Shown here: piece by piece, positions 31,529 through 45,200 of the stretch
Position numbering within the stretch: the stretch's first letter is position 1
How the letters are laid out: each line of letters opens with the position of its first letter
Source: Trichoplax adhaerens
Taxonomy: Eukaryota; Animalia; Placozoa
Assembly (NCBI RefSeq): GCF_000150275.1
Contig: NW_002060943.1
Coordinates: 3,988,008-4,052,007 of the forward strand
Length of the DNA: 64,000 bases
Direction: 5' to 3'
Translations under genes and position numbers: made by a program
Notes under the pieces: model-generated
Seen by the model: only the letters and a program-made list of their open reading frames with translations
The model's database searches: none
Told to the model about the DNA's origin: nothing

Positions 31529-33467
31529 CTACTCAAATAATTTTTAAATTGTTCTTCAGATTCTTCTATCATTCGCATTTTCATATCTTCCTTCATGTGA
31601 GCACTAAGTAATTCTATTAGAGTCTTTTTCAGCTATAAAAAATCAGTAATCAAGTGGGGTTAGTCAGCACATAACAATAGTGATACACAATCAGTCTAAT
31701 TTATTACTGTGACTACATAGGTATTTTTTAATCATAGTCGTCCTTACTATTTCTTGTGCTGCATCTTTAAGTAATCCGTACATAATGCTATTGCTTTTAG
31801 TCGGTTCACAGCTATCTTCAATTGCGTTATGTTGATATAATAATACGCTTAGCATAATATCTGCAGATATACGAAACGATAATCAAAGTACAAGATTAAT
31901 CATTTTAGCAGACAGTAGAAGAAGATGCAGTTGAAATTATGATAGCTTCTTAACAGAAATGTCAAATTCATATTCTTCAAATTTAGAGATAACCACTACC
32001 ACTTTTAACTAAACCCGGTTATAAGGTTATTGAATCTAATATATCAACTTCTCACCTTCAATAACCCTTTCAGACGCTAGCCTAAATACTATATCTTTAC
32101 CACTACAGCTAAACATTTGATCCAATAAAACATCCAACATAACATGATCTGCTAACCTTTCTTGCGTTTGGTACAAAACCTATCATTGCACAAAAAAATA
32201 ATTTTACTGCACCTTCTCGTGTGTTACACACTAGATTATTCCTTAGGCGTATAATTAAAATGGACTTTTATAGTACGTGATTTCTACATGCCATAGTACC
32301 TTACAATGCTTACATTAACCCTATATTGATGTGTTAATGATGTTTTAGCTATTTACATTAAGTAAAATAGTTTTACCGTATCTCTTTCTTTTCTCGTAAG
32401 CTTTAGCTCATCTGCAATAACATGGCTGCAATCCAGCATGATAACTTCGTTAATAACTTCATCAATTATTTTATCGGCAATCTCCTCTACGGTATCGCTA
32501 GTTATCTACTCAATAATAGGACATAACGAAAAAATTAAGCTACTTGTTATCTGTTTCTAGTTAAATCACATTTAAGCAGTAAAGCAGCCCTCATTCATGA
32601 AATCATCTCAGTCATTGCATATCAACAAAATGCATAGTTTTAAGTATAAAAAAGCTTACCTCTTCCTTTGTGATTTGCTCATGAATTATGCTATAAGTAT
32701 CACTGGTGAAGCTGTGAGATAGATCATAAAACACGAAATTGTAGCATTGAATCAAATTAACAAAGTATTTTTCTGATCGTTTCGCACTAACATCGGGTTC
32801 TAATTGCTGATACACTAATTTTCTAAAAGTTCATGGATCAAGTTATTAGCTCCTGCGTTAACTGCAGCTCGTGATTGTTATACGCATACAATATACAGGC
32901 ATACGCAATAAAATAGTTTCTGATATAAATAAAGAGAGCATTACTTAGAAAAGATACTGCTATAATGTAACTTGTAGGACCTAAAATAAAATTACATATG
33001 TCAAGACTTATTACTATCAATATGATTTTGATTATTATGTTCAATTAGCCATTTTCCTCAAATTGTACCTCAATGGTGTAGCGTAACACAGAATTATACT
33101 GTACAAGAGATCAATTTCCAATACGCCATTCTGTAATACTGAACAATACTATATATGCATACTGTATATTCACGCAGGTAGGAGGTCATATTTACTAATA
33201 TTTTCGCGCTGTAAATAATAGTTCACTACAATATCACAACAACTCTTACATTCGTTGTGGAGTAGAGACATCCGTAACGTCGACATCGCTTGTATTTTTA
33301 TTCGTATTGAATGTACTCCGTAAAGGTAAGGAATCTAGCGAAGGTATTTGTCTGTTATTAGTAGATATCGTAGGCGGATCAATAGTATGACCATCACTGA
33401 TTTTTAGTTTGCCTCTTGCTAGCAATAATTGAGGAGTTTCTTGATGTATCCAATCCTCCTGCATCAT
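31529..33467 (-). CDS. Uncharacterised multi-exon protein (helical, acidic)
   Basis: Several GT-AG bounded exons with open, protein-like frames (ITSDTVEEIADKIIDEVINEVIMLD; VLYQTQERLADHVMLDVLLDQMF; LKKTLIELLSAHMKEDMKMRMIEESEEQFKKLFE*). 5' structure and start not resolved; no family recognised. Confidence 0.55.
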
Positions 33468-34859
33468 TGTAGTGAATCAATGAACTACTCTAAAACTCGC
33501 GTTTCACTTTTTACTGGTACAGCATCACTAGGGACGTTTCTGGTTTCCCAGGAAACTTACAGTACAATGCGGTACAGTACACAGCAAGCTAAACTGTACA
33601 GTATGTACTGTAGGTGTTTGCATCTCCAATTGTCCATGGTGTTTGTGAACGTCAAGGACCGTCAATCAACAGCATCGATAACATCTGCTACAGTACGCAA
33701 CAGGTCTGCGCGAGTACACGGTATAAAGTTACTGAACCTCTGACAGGTCTATCAAATGGTAATACTATCTGTTAAATGAGCACATTATCGTAAACCGTCA
33801 GCAAAGCGACGGGAGTTTGTACCAGTGTACTTTACATGTTCAGTGTTCTGCACATATCACAGCGAATATTTAAGTAAAATAGTATTAAATTATCCCAACG
33901 ATTGCACTGAAATGTATTTTACTTCGATAAGATACGAGTGTACCCGTCCCGTAGAGCCTATTGTGCGACGTGCGTGCTTGATCAAGTAGTGGCGACTGCC
34001 GAATAAGCAGTACGTGTAATTAAAGCAGAAGTTCAAATGCTAGCATAGAGTATAGACTACATACTGACGTACTGAATATACTGTACATGAACTAGAGATA
34101 TACGAGTATTTAGCAAGTTTTAATAGCACGTCAAAAGTACTGTACAGTGTATAGTATCAACTGAAACTGTCACGTTGAAGTCTACCCTGTTGAGATAGTA
34201 ACAAGATGATTTTCTAACCACGTTTTGATTTAGAGGTTGATTTTGATATTTTTGTAATGTGCCAGGTCATATACATATATTAGATCCAAGACTATGTAGG
34301 ATAACAATCAAACACGACATACAGATGATTCAGAATAAGGTTTTATTGCGAAAATACAGGATCAAGATCGATATTCCGAGATAGCTATGTAACAACTAAT
34401 GTAGAGTATATGTACTGTATTATATAGCAAAAGCAATACTATTTACTATTTAACAGTCTTATACTGTACAGTACAACTGAAAACATATAATTGTATAAGC
34501 TAAATCAGGCCCAAACTAGATAAGAGCTCTATATTTGGTTGTAGCCTAATAACTCAGGAATACCAATTTGGTTCTTATTTCTCTAGATATTCTATACTTT
34601 TCCGGTATATCTTAGGAGATATCCTTCTACGAGTATATATATAAATACTATACAGGAATTTCAACGGAATACAACTTTGATTATTGAATTAACGAAGGGG
34701 AGACATCGAAAATAATCAGATTGTATGCAGTTAGGCTCCAGTACGTATACTCTGCAACTACAGTACATTGCTTCATAATATAATTATCATAGTCCTTATC
34801 TACTTGTACTGTAGTCAATGTTCCTACACATATCACAGTTTTTCATTTATTTAATGTTC

Positions 34860-35159
34860 TCAATTATCTGGCAGTTTTTCTTTATTTCTAGGAGGATCAT
34901 TCTTATGTATCAGCTTGGTTTCCATTTTTCTTCTTGTTTCAGTAGATGTATTTCCATGTGTCCGTTTGTACTCAAAGTTTTCTATATTTTTTAATTTACC
35001 AGACCTTTCATGTTCGCCTTTTCTTCTTGCGAGGTTATTTGTTTCACCCACATACTTGACGTCATTTTTAGAATTAGTATGTCTATAAACGCCTTGACTT
35101 GATGGCGGTGGATTAGATCCGGAAGGATCACTCTTGTTATATCGACCAGCAGGTATCAT
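34860..35159 (-). CDS. Stand-alone GIY-YIG nuclease domain protein, 99 aa, intronless
   Basis: PPPSSQGVYR-x9-YVGETNNLARRKGEH ... RKMETKLIHKNDPPRN matches the GIY-YIG layout G-V-Y, Y-V-G, R, H, E, N. ATG has a purine at -3; AATAAA follows the stop. Confidence 0.85.
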   Translation of the reverse strand: MIPAGRYNKSDPSGSNPPPSSQGVYRHTNSKNDVKYVGETNNLARRKGEHERSGKLKNIENFEYKRTHGNTSTETRRKMETKLIHKNDPPRNKEKLPDN

Positions 35160-35255
35160 CGCCGTAATATTCTTTTCTTCGAGCTAAATTAATCCGCTGT
35201 CGTCTGTAATAAGTCCTCGAACAAATGTAGAGAATAGAAGGACACTTGAAGTGCG

Positions 35256-35293
35256 AACTAATAAAATATGACAGCAACGTTCATGTATATATA
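35256..35293 (-). promoter_or_regulatory. Putative TATA box plus initiator of the GIY-YIG gene
   Basis: Minus-strand TATATATA (35293-35286) lies ~30-34 nt before Inr-like TTAGTT (35261-35256), ~100 nt upstream of the ATG. Confidence 0.5.
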
Positions 35294-36435
35294 ATCTCTA
35301 CTGTACTATCATGGAATATTCTAGAACTTACTAGTAGTTATTAAAATATACATAGAATGAGTATTCTCGAAGGTTCTGCATACAGTACATATGAGGTTCG
35401 AATACGTGCGCATCTAAGACTGATCCTTACGAAGTCATTCTACAGTACTAATCCTAGTACAAGTCTACATTGTACAGTATCTTAGCCAGTATTGTATAAT
35501 TAATGTTAATGTTATTTTAACGTTATATCAAATTTCATAAGTACCTTCAAAAAGTACCAAGGACTACTAGATGCAATTTAGTAGTCCATGACAGTACTGT
35601 ACACTGTACACTACAGTGTAGTGTTATCGTTCACAGAATGATGGATGATTCTGTGAGAAAAGTTCAAATAATTGACGTTTTACCGGATGGCGGTCTGGTA
35701 TTTCAGATCCTGAACTCTCTCGCATGAATGTACGGTAACATACAGCATATGAATAAATCTATTTGGAAACAACAAACTCGAAGGAGAAAAAGCAAGAAAG
35801 TTCTATTTTTGAAGTCATGTCATATCGCCGCAAAAGTTGCTAACTGTAAATATTACGTCCATAGAATTTTTTTTCTTACTCTATGATTACGTCATACGCA
35901 CAGTATACTGTCCATTTTATACGAGTACAGTACAGTACCAGCTGAATGTGTTGGTATCAATGCAGTCCATACGTTTGTACTGTTTTGTATTACTAATACG
36001 AAGGTATGTCCAAAAATGTGGCACCAATTTACGGAAAGTTTACGGAAAATGGAACGGAATTCCTACTTTCTGGAACATACTGCGCAGTGTACAGTACAAT
36101 TGAAGTGTACATTAAAGGGTCTCTACTCTCTAGTGTACATTTGTACTAATTTATGGAATGGAACATAAAACATGCGCACGCGATACAAGTGTTCCACTGT
36201 AGTGTACTGTATTTTGGTAAGATCAGGGACTACTGTACAGTACTAAAAGGAAAGAAAGAGGGACTCAAAGCGGCCATCAATGTGCCATTAATATTACAGA
36301 CATGCGGATACACTTGAAATAACCCCAAAAAGTGATCGGCCTCCACATAATTACTAGTATACGAGTAGTCAGCGATTGCTTTACGTCAGTGCTCCATACA
36401 ATCCCAATGTTGGCTGTTTAACAGCCTTTTCTTTC

Positions 36436-36596
36436 TACTGTACTTTGTATTGTACTGTACAGCACAGCATAACAAGTACAGTACAGTACAGTACAGTACT
36501 GTAGACCTGACTGTAGCTATCTTCACCAGAATCACGACAACAGTACAGTACAGCGTACTGTACACTGTACAGTGCCGTACTGTACACTGTACGGTA
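36436..36596. repeat. TACAG/CTGTA low-complexity cluster upstream of ATP6V1C
   Basis: Runs such as GTACAGTACAGTACAGTACAGTACTGTA. Similar clusters occur at other gene 5' ends. Confidence 0.8.
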
Positions 36597-36865
36597 GTCC
36601 TGGGAAGTTCTGGATTTGCAGAATGTGATGATCACATGATCATCGGATGCGCTTGCGTTGATACTAGTGTCGAGCATTCCATATGTCACCAATCTCTTCC
36701 AAAGCTCCGTCAAGTTGGAGCAGTTGTGCTGGTTGAAATCGCTGCTTGTTGCTCGATTCGACATTTACCTTGATTCAAATTGATATAATTCACCTGTAAG
36801 TATTCAGTGGACAACGATTGCCATCATAAATGGGTATGATATAAGTTCTTTTCTATTTTAGATCC

Positions 36866-39800
36866 ATGGCTAGTCAAGAGTATTGGTTGATTTCTGCACC
36901 AGGTGACAAAACCTGCCAGCAAACATGGGACAAGCTACAAGCTGCAACTTCAAAGATAGAAAAGCCACTATCGATCAACTCCAAGTACCAGCTGCCAGAT
37001 TTGAAGGTAACATTTTGCATAGAATAATACTTCCTAGCCAATAAATCTCCTATTGATCATGGTATTATGATCGATAACAATGATTAACATTGGAAGAATA
37101 TCGATCATCGCTTGATCATTAGGCCAACTCTGTTTTTTCTCATTTGTTAGCCCCGATCATAGTCAATTCATCAAGTATTCAATAGACATCGTAGAATTGT
37201 CTGAATCACACTGTCATAAATCATCATTATGTAATCTATCCTATCGATTCTAATAAATGATATTACGATACATTACTTTAATACGTTATCCTAGCCAGAA
37301 GATGTTTGATCACGTTACATTGTACAACTGCAGTCGATCATGACAGTACGCACAACATGGAGGGTACTTTCCATTTCTATCCATTACTATTACACTACTA
37401 CGTTACACCCAACTGCCACCGGCCCACCGCATTGTCAAAGTTAAAATTAAAATTGCTAATCTTGTCTAATTTTTAGTTCTTTGCTAATAATACCATGCGA
37501 TAAATATCGTTATGGCCACTATCACTTCATTGAATCCGAAAAATTTCCAATAGATAGCGCACTATTCACCCAGCATGTTGGTAATGGTGACGTTTTTACT
37601 TCCCTACCGTCTTCAACTGCTGCACCATATGACATTTCTTAATTAGTTGCTCTAGTAAAAGATACATCAATGAATCAGTCAGTAATGATTTCAATCGATC
37701 TATTTGAAGAATAGGTTGTTTCAACAACTTGATCAGTCTTACATCTTGAAAGGATAAGTAGCTAATAAGAGTATCATCGTAATGAATGCTAAATGGTACA
37801 GTTCTTTTTTCCTTTTTCAAAAAATATGGCGTGATAACACTTAATTTTTAGTAATGATAACAAACTGATTGACCATTCATATCAATCGTTTTGTAACAAG
37901 TTATTATACGATACATTAACTCGTCCAATATTCCAAAAGACTTGTTGTACACTGCAATACTACTGTAAGCAGAGCCCTCTATATAGCAGTATCCACGGAA
38001 TAACTTCTCGAGAAGTTAACGTTAAGAAACAACATAGTGCATATAAAAATAATAATTACCGTGCATATTTTGTTTTATTGAACAGATTGTCGTATTCACG
38101 TACGCGTATACTTACTGTACATTTGCAAATTCTACTGCATGTATATGCGTACTACCATGTATGCGGCATATTGTATGCCTATGATGTATGAATTAAAAAA
38201 GTAAAGCCCAATTAGAACAACAATATTTATATCTTCATTGACTTTGAACAGGTCGGTACTCTAGATACTTTGGTTGGATTATCCGATGACCTAGTCAAAG
38301 TGGATGGATATGTCGAAGGTGTAACGAGAAAACTTACTCAATATATGGCTGACATCTTGGAAGAACAAAAGGTTAAGAGATTAATTGATCTATTCTAGAC
38401 AATTGATAAAACTGCAACGGTTCACTTTATACTGGATTTAAGGCTATAGTATTTTCTCATCATATTACATAGAACTGTGGCTGGACTATTCTAATCTAAA
38501 ATATTGCAATATATATACTACTAAGAATTCGTGATTATACGTACTGTACTACTTACAGATTAATCCTAATTTAACTATAGTATAACTCCTGTAATAAACT
38601 GTAGAGAGTGTTTGCAATTATAGAAAGTTGTATCATATGATTACAAAATCTGAAGGACTAATCTAAAATAAGCTTTTTAATACTATTCATCATCAGGATA
38701 AACTTCCAGAAAATATGAAAGTTTCTGGACGTAAGTATTCTAACTGTATTTCGCTAAAATTGGAAATAATCTATGAAATTTTTAAATAATGTTACTGAAA
38801 ATGGCCAAAAAACCTAATTGTGCTTAGATGATTTACAAACGTACATGTCCAAATGGCAATGGGATCATGCTAAGTATCCCGTTAAGCAACATTTAAGGAG
38901 TATCGTTGAAATCATCAACAAGGCAAGACATCCTCATTGAATTCTTATAAATTACCGGGCAATTTAAGATTATATTTATGTATTAACTTGGCGCTTATTT
39001 GCTAGGATTAGATCCCTAATTATAATTGATTCGTACCTAATTAGATACTAACTGTAATTATTCTTTGGATTTTCTAGCAAGTTACAAACATTGATGCAGA
39101 TCTTAAAGTTAAATCCCAGGCGTATAATGCCATTAAGAATACCCTGCAGTCATTAGAGCGCAAACAAGCGTAAGTTGATATTATACGATACCTTAATGAA
39201 TAAGTAACATTTAGAAGAAGCAACTAAGCACTGTTACTGTGCAAGCCGTGGTATTAATTGATCACCATTATAATTTTAACATCGATTGCTACAATTTTTA
39301 GGGGTAGTTTATTATCCCGTGATCTAAGTGACTTGGTGAAAAAGGAGGATTTTGTCTTGAATTCGGAATATTTATCAACCCTGTTGGTTATTGTCTCTAA
39401 GTATGCTATGCCAGATAAATTTTGAGAAGTTTTCAGTGCGACGCTATTAGACAGAGAAATACTTATTTTTAGGTCTTCCGTCAATGATTGGACTAATAAT
39501 TACGAAAAGTTATGCGATATGATCGTTCCACGATCTTCAAAGTATGCTGATGATTGAAATTTATTAAATCGTATTAATTTTATAACTTATTATGACTATA
39601 CAATCCTCTGATATAGTTAATTTTTATCGTCTTTTGCATAGAAAAATCTACGAAGACAACGAGCATGCCCTTTTTAGCGTCACTCTCTTTAATAAAGTTA
39701 TCGATGAATTTAAGCATCACGCTCGTGATAACAGGTTATTCATGTTATGTTTTCTTCTACATATTATCGCTACATTATCATTATTGCCTGGAACTAAATA

Positions 39801-40624
39801 CCAGTTCCAATTTAGGTTTATAGTACGTGATTTTAAATATAATGAAGCAGAAGTTCAAGCCGGCAAGAGCGAAATTACCCGATTAGAAGCCGATAAGAAA
39901 AAACAATTCGTACGCTTTTCGTATAGCAGATCTTTTCTTGGTTTTGCACTTTTTTCTAATTGTTAACTGTATTTTAAGGGACCCTTAATGCGTTGGCTGA
40001 AAACCAACTTTGGTGAATGTGTTATTGCCTTTGTTCACATCAAAGTTTGTAGCTTTACAATTTATTGACGAATTTGCAAATCTATTGCAGGAAGGGGCGA
40101 TCAGTTTTAATTAAATGATGTATTTTTTTTTCATTATTATAGGTATTACGGCTATTTGTTGAATCTGTTTTAAGGTTAGACGGGTTGCGGTATTCCTCTT
40201 AATGCAACAATTACGTTTTTAACTTTCCTGATCAATTTTTATTAGATATGGACTTCCAGTAAACTTTCAAGCCGCTTTACTTCTGGTAATCGTACATTTG
40301 AATGCGTACTAAATGTATTTATGATGGTACTCATTAAATAATATCTTTTTATAACAAATAGCCCACTAAGAAAAGTAGTAAGAGGTTAAGGGAGGCCTTG
40401 ATGAATTTGTATCGTCATTTAGATAGCACCGCGAATACTAATCTTGATGTAAGTTACAGAGTTGTGCATCAGTTCATAAATTGATAAAGATATAACATCT
40501 TGATATGTTTACAATTATGCCTTTATAGATTGGATTTGAGATCCCAGGAGTCACCACTCAGCAAGGAGATTATTATCCTTATGTATACTTTCCCGTTAAT
40601 GTTGATTTCAGTGTTGCTAACTGA
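36866..40624 (+). CDS. ATP6V1C: V-type proton ATPase subunit C
   Basis: [68 protein letters not shown] and DYYPYVYF motifs. Possible 5'-UTR intron at 36796-36861. Confidence 0.95.
38923..39077 (+). other. Non-canonical GC-AG intron in ATP6V1C
   Basis: AAG|GCAAGA donor joins IVEIINK to [10 protein letters not shown] in frame; no GT donor at this conserved position. Confidence 0.8.
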
Positions 40625-42253: not shown

Positions 42254-45200
42254 CTACTTTGGCCTGTTAATCCCTAAAGAATAAGACGTACTGCGAATAG
42301 AATTTCGAGCTGGAATAAAAGATGAAACATACTTATTAAAATTATATGCGTATATAACACTTCGATCCTCTATTATTATACTCTTATTGTACAACATGAG
42401 GAACCATTTGCAAACATTATGCTCGAATCATAAATGTTTGCTGAAAGAATACCTGAAAGCAACAGACAACATTTAAAATCATTACTTTGAATTTACCTTC
42501 GAAATAAGATGTGTCAGTTTCATTATCAGGGCAGGGAATAAATGGAGGAGGATCGTTAAGAATATTATTCCAATCCAAGTCATGAAAAAAAGGGTATGCC
42601 TTGACCTCTAAAATAGCAGAAAATATCTACTTTAATGCCATTCTGCCGAATTCAAGGTTTACATTAATTACCTAGATAACTTTCAATCTATAGTTGCTAT
42701 CACATGATGCAGCCTAGTAATAGATCTAGTTACCTTGAACACGCGGACGGTCATCAGGATTTAACTGAAGAAGGGAATCGATTAAAGACATAGCTTCCAA
42801 GCTTAGCGCTTCTTCTCCACCTGGCCAAGGGATGTCTGCTCCGTAGGACAAATAAAATGTCACGATTTTTCAAAGCATATTTTGATCTTGCGATAGGCTT
42901 ATTTACATGCACTATTGTTTTATATCGGTAGCATATTTGTAATCTTACCGCGCTCTTTAATATTGTTGAATATTCTCTCAACACTTTCATCCGAAAATGG
43001 CGGAATACCAGTTAAAAATTCAAATAAACAGACACCAACTGCCCACCAATCAACAGAGGTATCTAATAATTTGTGATAAATCCTTGAATATCATTTTCTG
43101 AAACAGCTTATATAATTTCACAATAAGTAATAATTCTAATGAGAAGTATAAGTTACCTTCATTATGATCTTCCCCTGACAAAACTTCTGGTGCTAAATAG
43201 TCTGGGGTACCAAGCAATTGATGCCGCTTTACAGGAGACCCATTCCGAGCCCTAACGCAAAACTTTGTTGTCTTTAACGGTGTCTCTTTGAACATACTAT
43301 TGGAAGATGAATTACTGATACTAGGGACTGCAGGTGGTGACAATGTTCCATCGCTATCGACAGATATAATACTAGAAAAATGATGTCCACATTTTAGATT
43401 TTTTACGGTAGAGCAAGTTGCAAGCTTTCGATTTCCTGAACGTAAATGATCATGCTGATGGCTGCGATCTTCATCATCTTCATCGTTATACGATGATTGA
43501 AATAGATATTTTCTAATCGATTCAGTTGTATCAACTATTTCTCCTTGCATAGGCGAGTTCCGAGTAGAACCATCGCTAATAAATGGCGAACAAAACGACG
43601 GCGATTTGATAGGATCAGTAGATGAATCATGCGTTCTATTAACATTTCGGTAGTGATCGTGACGTTCGTAATATTCCAAAGAAGATTGGTCACGGGATGC
43701 AGAACCCTAGAATGAATTAAATAAATTGGATTCTTAGTAAGTGCAATATCACTAAATGGACTTTATTCGTGAACCCAGTAAATACTGTACAATTTTTTTC
43801 GTTATAGCAAGTTAAATGTTTAAATAGTTCAACCTAGTAAGAATTGGAGGTTTACTCTGTGGGAATATTGTAATTTAACATTCATAAATAAGGATATAAT
43901 CCAAGGTGTTAATAATTATAAAATAATATAATGAAATTAGTTCGTGGGGTGAGTTTTAAATATATGAAAAGTAGAGAAGGTCAGACAGACCGTATTCACT
44001 ATTGCTACGAATGTGGCCTGGTGACCGAAGTAATAGACCTTAACATTTAACAATATTTATGATTTCTTTTATCGTAGTGATATTTTTTAATAATTCAACT
44101 ATAGTGGTTACATTGCAACGTGAAATACCGCTTACAGTCTACTTTCATAATAATTGATGATCATGACGCAGCTCAACACGGCAAAATAATAGGTAAAAGT
44201 AATGAAGTAATGTATATCACATGTAATTAATTAAAAGAGGCATCTTTCCAATCTAAGGAAACAGATAGGGTAATGACATCGATAAAGAATCTATTTTTAA
44301 TGTTGTTCAATACACTGTGAGTAATTGTTTGTAGGTGAAGTATTTACAGTTATAATAGTTGTCATCAGATATCCAACGTACAGAGTATGACATTGAACTG
44401 TTAGTTAAATCATAAAAGAAAAGCAACTAGATGAAGTTAGGACACTTACAAAGGCTAGAACACTAGTTAATGATGCAACTTGTCCGGGTGTTCTATAATA
44501 CGCTGCATAGCGCGAAGGAGTCACACTTGATGGTAAACAAGGGGAACTCATCATATCCTGATAGCTAACGTCTAGGCGAAGAATAAAATAAATTAATCAA
44601 GAATATCATGTACAAGTTAGCATATTTCTTTATGAAAGATCGATACAAGACATTGACACCTTACCACGATTTAATGTTAGCCTAGATAAGCCAAAATCGG
44701 TCAATTTTAAATAGCCTTCAGCTGAAATTAACATGTTGTCCGGCTTTAAATCACGGTGAACTATATTATGTGAATGGAGATACTCTAAGGCAGCAACAAT
44801 TTGGCTAGTATAGAATCGAGCTGTTGATTCATCGAAATAGCCTAAATTCATGAGTAACGATTTAACATCACCACCTATCATGTATTCCATAATAAGATAG
44901 ACACGATCATTTGATTGTAGTGAATAAAATAAATGGACAATAAATGGACTACAGGATAGCGCCATCGCGTCACGTTCAGCGATAACTTGAGTAGCCATAT
45001 TTTTGCGAATTAATTCTTCTTTTGCCATTACTTTTAAAGCGAATAATTTGTCTCGCCGACGTGCTAAATAAACTTTAGCGAAACCGCCATGGCTAATGGG
45101 TTTAATAATTTCAAAATCGGATACACTAGGAGGCAATTTGGTGGTAATTTGATTATAGTCCTTATCATCTTTTGTGGTATTATCAAGTGGTTGTTGACAA

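Follow-up and report, generated by a model that had tools for sequence, protein, structure and literature searches.

How did a 99-amino-acid reading frame that is almost entirely one GIY-YIG nuclease domain come to lie, without introns, among the spliced genes of the placozoan Trichoplax adhaerens? An initial annotation of the 64-kb stretch of DNA analysed here (the window) had proposed that the frame is an expressed nuclease gene of prokaryotic or viral descent, retained by the animal and possibly serving DNA repair or defence. Placozoans are a key early-branching lineage for bacterium-to-animal transfer and few well-supported transfers of this kind with transcription from eukaryotic signals are known so far. 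The features on which the analysis rests are the following, all on the minus strand.

34860..35159 (−): GIY-YIG nuclease coding sequence, 99 aa, stop codon included (ORF list, Pfam, AlphaFold2, Foldseek)
35160..35250 (−): 5' UTR (RNA contigs of runs X14, X13 and X6, reaching 35250, 35239 and 35216)
35286..35293 (−): TATA box TATATATA, ~35 nt upstream of 35250, the 5'-most end among the RNA contigs (from sequence; putative promoter element)
34326..34859 (−): 3' UTR, ~534 nt, in the long form of the mRNA (supported by overlapping X14 and X6 contigs that extend to 34399 and 34326)
34342..34347 (−): distal AATAAA poly(A) signal, used (poly(A) in an X6 contig, 16 nt past the hexamer)
34846..34851 (−): proximal AATAAA, 9 nt past the stop codon (from sequence; RNA contigs read through it)

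The reading frame, its fold and its transcript

Pfam recognised the GIY-YIG domain (PF01541) at residues 23–89 of the protein (30.7 bits, cut-off 22.6; E 4e-7). The motifs that the initial annotation had named are all present: GVY at 23–25, YVG at 36–38, R46, H50, E80 (in METKLI) and N92 (in PPRN). The catalytic set (Y25, Y36, R46, H50, E80, N92) is complete, and these residues were invariant across the placozoan copies and 92–100% conserved in 102 bacterial relatives. An AlphaFold2 model built from an input alignment of 106 relatives was confident (mean pLDDT 86.9, pTM 0.78) and has the layout of the URI fold, with strands at 23–28, 34–40 and 61–66 and helices at 43–53 and 73–87. When the model was compared with the PDB by Foldseek, the best nine matches were all UvrC N-terminal GIY-YIG domains (TM 0.63–0.72), superposing at an rmsd of ~2.4 Å over ~82 residues with 20–27% identity; R.Eco29kI, T4 EndoII and I-TevI matched far below UvrC. 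A profile search of PDB sequences also led to UvrC (1yd6), with G23, Y25, Y36, G38, R46, E80, I84, P89 and N92 aligned. The length of the frame is weak evidence on its own, because open frames of 99 codons or more number 33 in the window, compared with 5.35 on average in composition shuffles. Chance does not, however, account for the family match or the fold, and the view of the frame as little more than a single GIY-YIG domain was upheld by the Pfam score and the UvrC-type model alike.

Transcripts of the frame were seen in metatranscriptomic RNA-seq runs X13 and X14 and in run X6, which comes from another study. The RNA contigs were confined to 34326–35250, and none was found in the flanks at 33938–34339 and 35680–36483 in any of the three runs. 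One 622-nt contig in X14 covered 34659–35250 and bridged the stop codon. In X6, the contig starting at 34326 has 22 non-templated T ahead of it, which correspond to the poly(A) tail of an mRNA transcribed from the minus strand. Because a 66-nt GT..AG intron of a neighbouring gene (36796–36861) was spliced out in the same runs, these runs contain RNA rather than DNA carry-over; within the nuclease transcript itself, the RNA contigs gave no credible splice joint. The mRNA is unspliced, polyadenylated and ~0.92 kb long, comprising a leader of ~90 nt, 300 nt of coding sequence and a trailer of ~534 nt, with ends that are approximate because the RNA evidence consists of assembled contigs. The initial annotation's claims of a TATA box, two AATAAA signals, an intronless structure and expression thus all held, and the distal AATAAA was seen in use. 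We concluded that a real, transcribed single-exon gene encodes a minimal stand-alone GIY-YIG (URI-fold) protein with predicted nuclease activity.

Several signals near the gene were examined and set apart from this evidence. Run X1, a candidate RNA run, was discarded as a source of expression data; its depth is flat and it behaves as DNA. Many joints near 35591–35617 and 36554 were rejected as repeat chimeras: their ends are non-canonical, and their sides, 20 nt long, lie at a short repeat. Short CAGTACTGTAC-type repeats occupy 35546–35680 and 36434–36573 of the window, where chimeric joints and raised depth occur in all runs; these repeats break contigs and mimic splice joints. Rfam gave no match within 33000–37000. 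There is no ISRE-like element at the promoter of the window copy, and the sole ISRE-like match in the window (43424–43436) falls in apparent coding sequence.

Genomic setting and related placozoan sequences

A 13-Mb scaffold carries the nuclease gene, which lies between the gene for an SH3-domain protein (26.9–28.4 kb) and that for V-ATPase subunit C. An exon of the latter was confirmed at 39592–39966 on the plus strand, to the right of the nuclease gene, in agreement with the location beside ATP6V1C first proposed. The plus-strand neighbour that carries the 66-nt intron, seen in RNA contigs of three runs, appears to form the 5' part of the V-ATPase C gene; it starts ~1.3 kb from the start of the nuclease gene, the two lying head to head.

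With a GC content of 0.36 and a GC3 of 0.24 beside flanks of GC 0.336, the frame matches the composition of its host. In a DNA-like run, identical contigs tiled the gene and both flanks at a flat depth of ~105–115x in all 30 bins. The gene was also found in an independent assembly, that of Trichoplax sp. H2, in which TrispH2_003343 (on a 788-kb contig) is 99% identical to the window protein and differs by the single change E74K. No database protein with 100% identity was returned, and only the H2 protein was present; thus, the original annotation of T. adhaerens seemingly missed the gene. Given the tiled flanks and the second assembly, neither contamination nor misassembly is credible.

An ORF survey found no reverse transcriptase (RT), RING or ankyrin frames near the gene and no long ORF within ±5 kb. 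A ~115-nt dispersed repeat lies at 33713–33830 of the window and has 451 or more candidate copies genome-wide, 40 of which were scored and were 94–99% identical. Its depth is very high in the DNA-like run (~1600x the local level) and in the RNA runs, and Rfam gave no match for it. The repeat could be a SINE-like element or represent a family of small-RNA genes not yet recognised.

The whole genome (105.6 Mb in 1414 pieces) was searched in six frames for Pfam GIY-YIG domains, and this settled the paralog count at two copies, the only other match being one unrelated small locus on piece C898. That third match (C898:2239-2415, E 3.7e-7) covers profile positions 17–77 only, in a 101-codon frame on a small contig. 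The second copy of the nuclease gene (C1414:11786481-11786756; NCBI TRIADDRAFT_52710, on a scaffold of 13.26 Mb) lies 7.7 Mb away and is 51% identical to the first. By blastn, the two copies have 71% DNA identity over the ORF and ~44 nt upstream of it; their flanks have no common sequence and no terminal repeats, which, together with the ORF survey, bears out the earlier remark that no RT, RING, ankyrin or terminal-repeat sequence is visible nearby. In T. adhaerens the paralog (L002:1483-1790) has a premature TAG after residue 82 and has lost the catalytic Asn. In Trichoplax sp. H2 it is intact (TrispH2_004076, 103 aa), which suggests strain-level presence or absence of a copy predicted to be functional. 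This contrast between an intact paralog in one strain and a truncated one in the other amounts to a natural experiment.

Two further sequences, P0002 (163 aa, 70% identical to the window protein) and P0164 (188 aa, 75% identical), were counted as placozoan-type by sequence grouping, as they carry no organism label. Both have an N-terminal extension of ~60–85 residues that is conserved between them and missing from the window gene. A comparison of the P0002 extension with ±2 kb around the window gene gave nothing significant, and an in-frame TAG stands at 35184–35186, eight codons above the window ATG. The ~44 nt immediately before the ATG, which are 71% like the paralog, may be a remnant of a lost N-terminal coding extension, although we regard this as doubtful.

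In a search of 5.8 billion clustered proteins the five placozoan-type sequences made up the entire group, after which the E-value jumped from 6e-39 to 2e-19. A maximum-likelihood tree of 61 sequences (~109 columns, unrooted) was built without the long-branch sequence P0038, which had disturbed a first tree. It placed the five in one clade with support of 100/100 and a stem of 1.40 changes per site. This clade points to a single acquisition by the placozoan lineage; because the tree is unrooted and has ~109 columns, it does not name the donor lineage.

Bacterial relatives and comparison with known nucleases

We searched 1.84 billion representative proteins exhaustively with a profile and obtained 296 matches at E ≤ 1e-3. 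The best 23 of these 296 were all ~100–180 aa long, except for one 1062-aa repeat protein, and the non-placozoan representatives (n = 20) aligned to residues ~5–95 of the query with E-values of 1e-16 to 1e-10. Identity to the bacterial relatives was 35–46% over residues 5–95. Beyond the GIY-YIG signature, the motifs PP..G.YR, Y.GETNNL.RR..EH.RSGKL and STS.TRR..E...I..H.PP.N are common to the animal and bacterial proteins. A search of GTDB bacterial species genomes with an 8-sequence alignment as query returned 40 loci at 30–59% identity (35–46% for the full-length ones). They came mostly from Oscillospiraceae, Lachnospiraceae and other Clostridia (Gemmiger formicilis, Faecalibacterium, Pseudoflavonifractor), and further from Bacteroidales, Thiomargarita, Dehalococcoidia, Rhodothermales and Pelagibacteraceae.

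In the 5.8 billion proteins, every named match past the E-value gap was bacterial (Gemmiger formicilis, Clostridia, Subdoligranulum, Faecousia). The named database matches were without exception bacterial proteins annotated 'GIY-YIG nuclease family protein', and bacterial, too, were the neighbours of the nuclease in a protein atlas. No eukaryote other than the placozoan type appeared among the named matches, to which this statement applies, most relatives being unnamed metagenome proteins. Neither of the outcomes against which the initial annotation had set its proposal was seen: the best relatives are bacterial and not of the SLX1, ANKLE1 or Penelope type, and in place of a broad animal distribution only placozoan-type sequences appear.

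A viral origin was considered and found no support. Searches of 50,697 phage records and 72,556 plasmid records with the animal protein returned no match, and IMG/VR gave two weak matches to part of the domain only. A phage match was obtained for one bacterial family member, at 29% identity and in a single case, and matches to viral structure models were generic (19–32% identity). Of the two sources first proposed, the prokaryotic one therefore stands on its bacterial nearest relatives, and the viral one lacks support, no close virus having appeared. The gene was most likely acquired from bacteria by horizontal transfer. The bacterial relatives and the polyadenylated transcript, taken together, support the original description of an expressed gene of apparent prokaryotic descent. 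A literature search found no paper naming these nuclease genes.

The closest known system is an uncharacterised bacterial family of stand-alone GIY-YIG proteins of ~100–112 aa, with members in Gemmiger formicilis, Faecalibacterium, Pseudoflavonifractor, Dehalococcoidia MAGs and Thiomargarita. It is of the same length class as the window protein, and the whole domain aligns without gaps at 35–46% identity. The two differ at their ends. The bacterial N-terminal RGRP (G 97%, R 93%, P 84%), which we take to resemble an AT-hook, reads AGRY in the window protein, and its Pro is replaced in all placozoan copies, one of which has GPY. The bacterial C-terminal GGxGR tail (Gly 96–97%) is missing; the window protein ends in KEKLPDN, and the placozoan copies have no Gly there. 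They differ also in setting, the animal gene having its own TATA promoter and poly(A) signal and the bacterial gene often lying beside a WYL/WCX regulator.

A divergent neighbour of ~360 aa with WYL/WCX domains (PADLOC WYL, E 1e-15; Pfam WCX, E 8e-8) was found in 15 of 33 bacterial loci, with examples in Clostridia at L004:3949-5031 and L006:3800-4885 (loci L003–L032). The GIY-YIG gene and the WYL/WCX gene form a conserved two-gene module. Eight bacterial loci have a small upstream ORF in common, and one Dehalococcoidia copy adjoins a phage portal gene. PADLOC gave no match for the animal protein and, in the bacterial neighbourhoods, recognised only the WYL regulator. Genes for DNA damage or defence are often under the control of WYL regulators, and this context may offer a weak hint at the function of the nuclease family.

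Among characterised proteins, the best structural match is the N-terminal domain of UvrC (PDB 1yd6, 1ycz), in which all catalytic positions are equivalent. UvrC, however, is a repair protein of ~600 residues with a UvrB-binding region, a second, RNase H-like nuclease and a helix-hairpin-helix, none of which is present in the 99-aa protein. The Lys that follows YxG in UvrC is Glu39 in the window protein, and the NCBIfam UvrC models scored 11 bits against cut-offs of 451–1108. SLX1, ANKLE1 and the Penelope-like endonuclease belong to the same superfamily and have the same catalytic chemistry, but they are multidomain proteins (with a RING/PHD finger, ankyrin and LEM domains, and a reverse transcriptase, respectively) that are inherited vertically or as transposons. 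The window protein has no sequence beyond the nuclease domain, and no SLX1 chain was found among the PDB sequence or Foldseek matches. Tox-URI toxins have the generic fold and motifs in common with the window protein, Tox-URI1 having been described with Y, YxG, R, [RK]xxE and N (PMC3482391). The window gene differs from these toxins in having no trafficking/RHS domain and no immunity gene.

Selection, rival readings and possible role

Our preferred reading, to which we assign a probability of about 0.7, is that a bacterial stand-alone GIY-YIG nuclease was transferred once to a placozoan ancestor, where it was duplicated, kept and transcribed. A gene for a protein of ~100 residues would have entered the placozoan ancestor by one horizontal transfer, old enough for the gene to have taken on host base composition, a host promoter and host poly(A) signals, and the duplication would have come afterwards. 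The analyses of selection bear on whether the gene was kept for a function.

Compared with a 3%-divergent allele from run X14, the window ORF showed 10 nonsynonymous changes and 1 synonymous nucleotide change, giving 8 amino acid replacements. This ratio was compatible with neutrality (p = 0.29), and omega ≤ 0.2 was rejected (p = 0.0014). The paralog pair had a pN of 0.30 against a pS of 0.22. Of the 38 columns that 60% or more of the bacterial members conserve, 22 were invariant in four placozoan sequences, versus 12 of the 53 remaining columns (Fisher p = 9e-4). The eight replacements in the divergent allele all fell outside the catalytic residues, and several restored the family consensus. 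The core is constrained and the remaining residues are free or diversifying; constraint is visible on the catalytic core only. The dN/dS test that the initial annotation had called for is thus divided: the catalytic core is conserved, but the whole ORF is not distinguishable from neutral sequence and the paralogs have pN above pS. Its claim of a retained gene fared similarly, in that the ORF is intact in H2, in the divergent allele and in the two relatives of 70–75% identity, but constraint can be demonstrated for the catalytic core alone.

The main rival takes the gene to be an expressed but functionless relic that is drifting towards a pseudogene in the Trichoplax lineage, its transcription being a by-product of a fortuitous TATA promoter. 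A dN/dS that cannot be separated from 1 between close alleles and exceeds 1 between paralogs is what such a relic would give, and the truncation of the paralog in T. adhaerens, the loss of the N-terminal extension and of both terminal motifs of the family, and the failure of the original annotation to call the gene all agree with it. Against this, the frame is open in five sequences spanning 49–99% identity, where a neutral frame of 300 nt at 34% GC should have gained stops. The catalytic residues and 22 of the 38 family-conserved columns are all invariant, and the replacements in the divergent allele avoid the former while partly returning to the consensus. We therefore consider decay to be an unlikely account, although it is the strongest of the rivals.

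A selfish origin, in which the gene is what remains of a homing endonuclease escaped from an organellar or phage intron, or of a Penelope-like endonuclease module, is very improbable. GIY-YIG domains typify elements of this kind, there are two copies in the genome, and weak N-terminal matches were obtained to TIGR01453, the group I intron endonuclease model (E 2e-4; residues 23–60 only), and to PHROG homing endonucleases (E 1e-4). These matches are limited to the generic N-terminal ~35 residues and score far under the curated cut-offs (21.4 bits against 56 for TIGR01453), and far stronger full-length matches lead to the bacterial family, which has no homing-endonuclease DNA-binding domain. I-TevI-type enzymes share the generic fold and motifs with the window protein, but the window gene has neither their C-terminal DNA-binding domain nor their intron context, and it is nuclear and lies between host genes. 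A Penelope-like element would be fused or adjacent to a reverse transcriptase and present in many dispersed copies; here there are only two copies, with unshared flanks and no terminal repeats, and no RT or long ORF within ±5 kb.

Least credible of all are bacterial contamination or misassembly, which an intron-free, bacterial-like gene in an animal that harbours bacterial endosymbionts might suggest (contamination screening for Trichoplax endosymbionts has been described in PMC6067683), and an ancient eukaryotic gene lost everywhere else; the former is opposed by a host-like GC3 of 0.24, spliced animal genes flanking on the same scaffold, two independent assemblies, flanks tiled at the depth of the gene, and a poly(A)-tailed mRNA with a eukaryotic poly(A) signal, and the latter by the lack of any other eukaryote among named matches in the 5.8 billion proteins.

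If the gene was transferred from bacteria and kept, as we prefer to read it, its product would be a divalent-metal-dependent DNA endonuclease or nickase acting like the N-terminal domain of UvrC. Following UvrC-like chemistry, the Tyr/Arg/His cluster would position and activate the attacking water, and Glu80 would hold the metal. Cutting of low specificity, or dependence on a partner, is probable because the protein has no DNA-binding module of its own and has lost RGRP and GGxGR. The initial annotation's suggestion of a role in DNA repair or defence is a guess. Within it, we would favour a defence or stress nuclease that cuts foreign or damaged DNA, because the core is conserved while other residues change fast; such a role would also fit the WYL context of the bacterial relatives and an animal that digests bacteria and houses endosymbionts. 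That the bacterial nuclease was domesticated as a placozoan innate-defence effector is a tentative proposal and, on present evidence, an improbable one; it would fit a frozen core with a fast-changing surface, the pattern expected in conflict with prey bacteria, endosymbionts or viruses.

The finding alone is a modest addition, with a possible defence nuclease as its product. The case is easy to test, since an enzyme of 99 residues can be expressed and assayed directly, and it draws attention to an uncharacterised family of minimal bacterial GIY-YIG proteins often paired with a WYL-type regulator. The promoter of the paralog contains two GGAAACCGAAAGC elements (IRF/ISRE-like), ~108 nt apart and just upstream of a TATATAAG box; the pair lies 130–280 nt before the paralog ATG (L002:1200-1350; C1414 ~11786180-11786330). 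If the domestication proposal were right, this family would exemplify, in an early animal, a prokaryotic nuclease wired into an immune circuit of the interferon-regulatory-factor type. The genome encodes two IRF DNA-binding domains, at C1414:4393849 and C1411:4869835.
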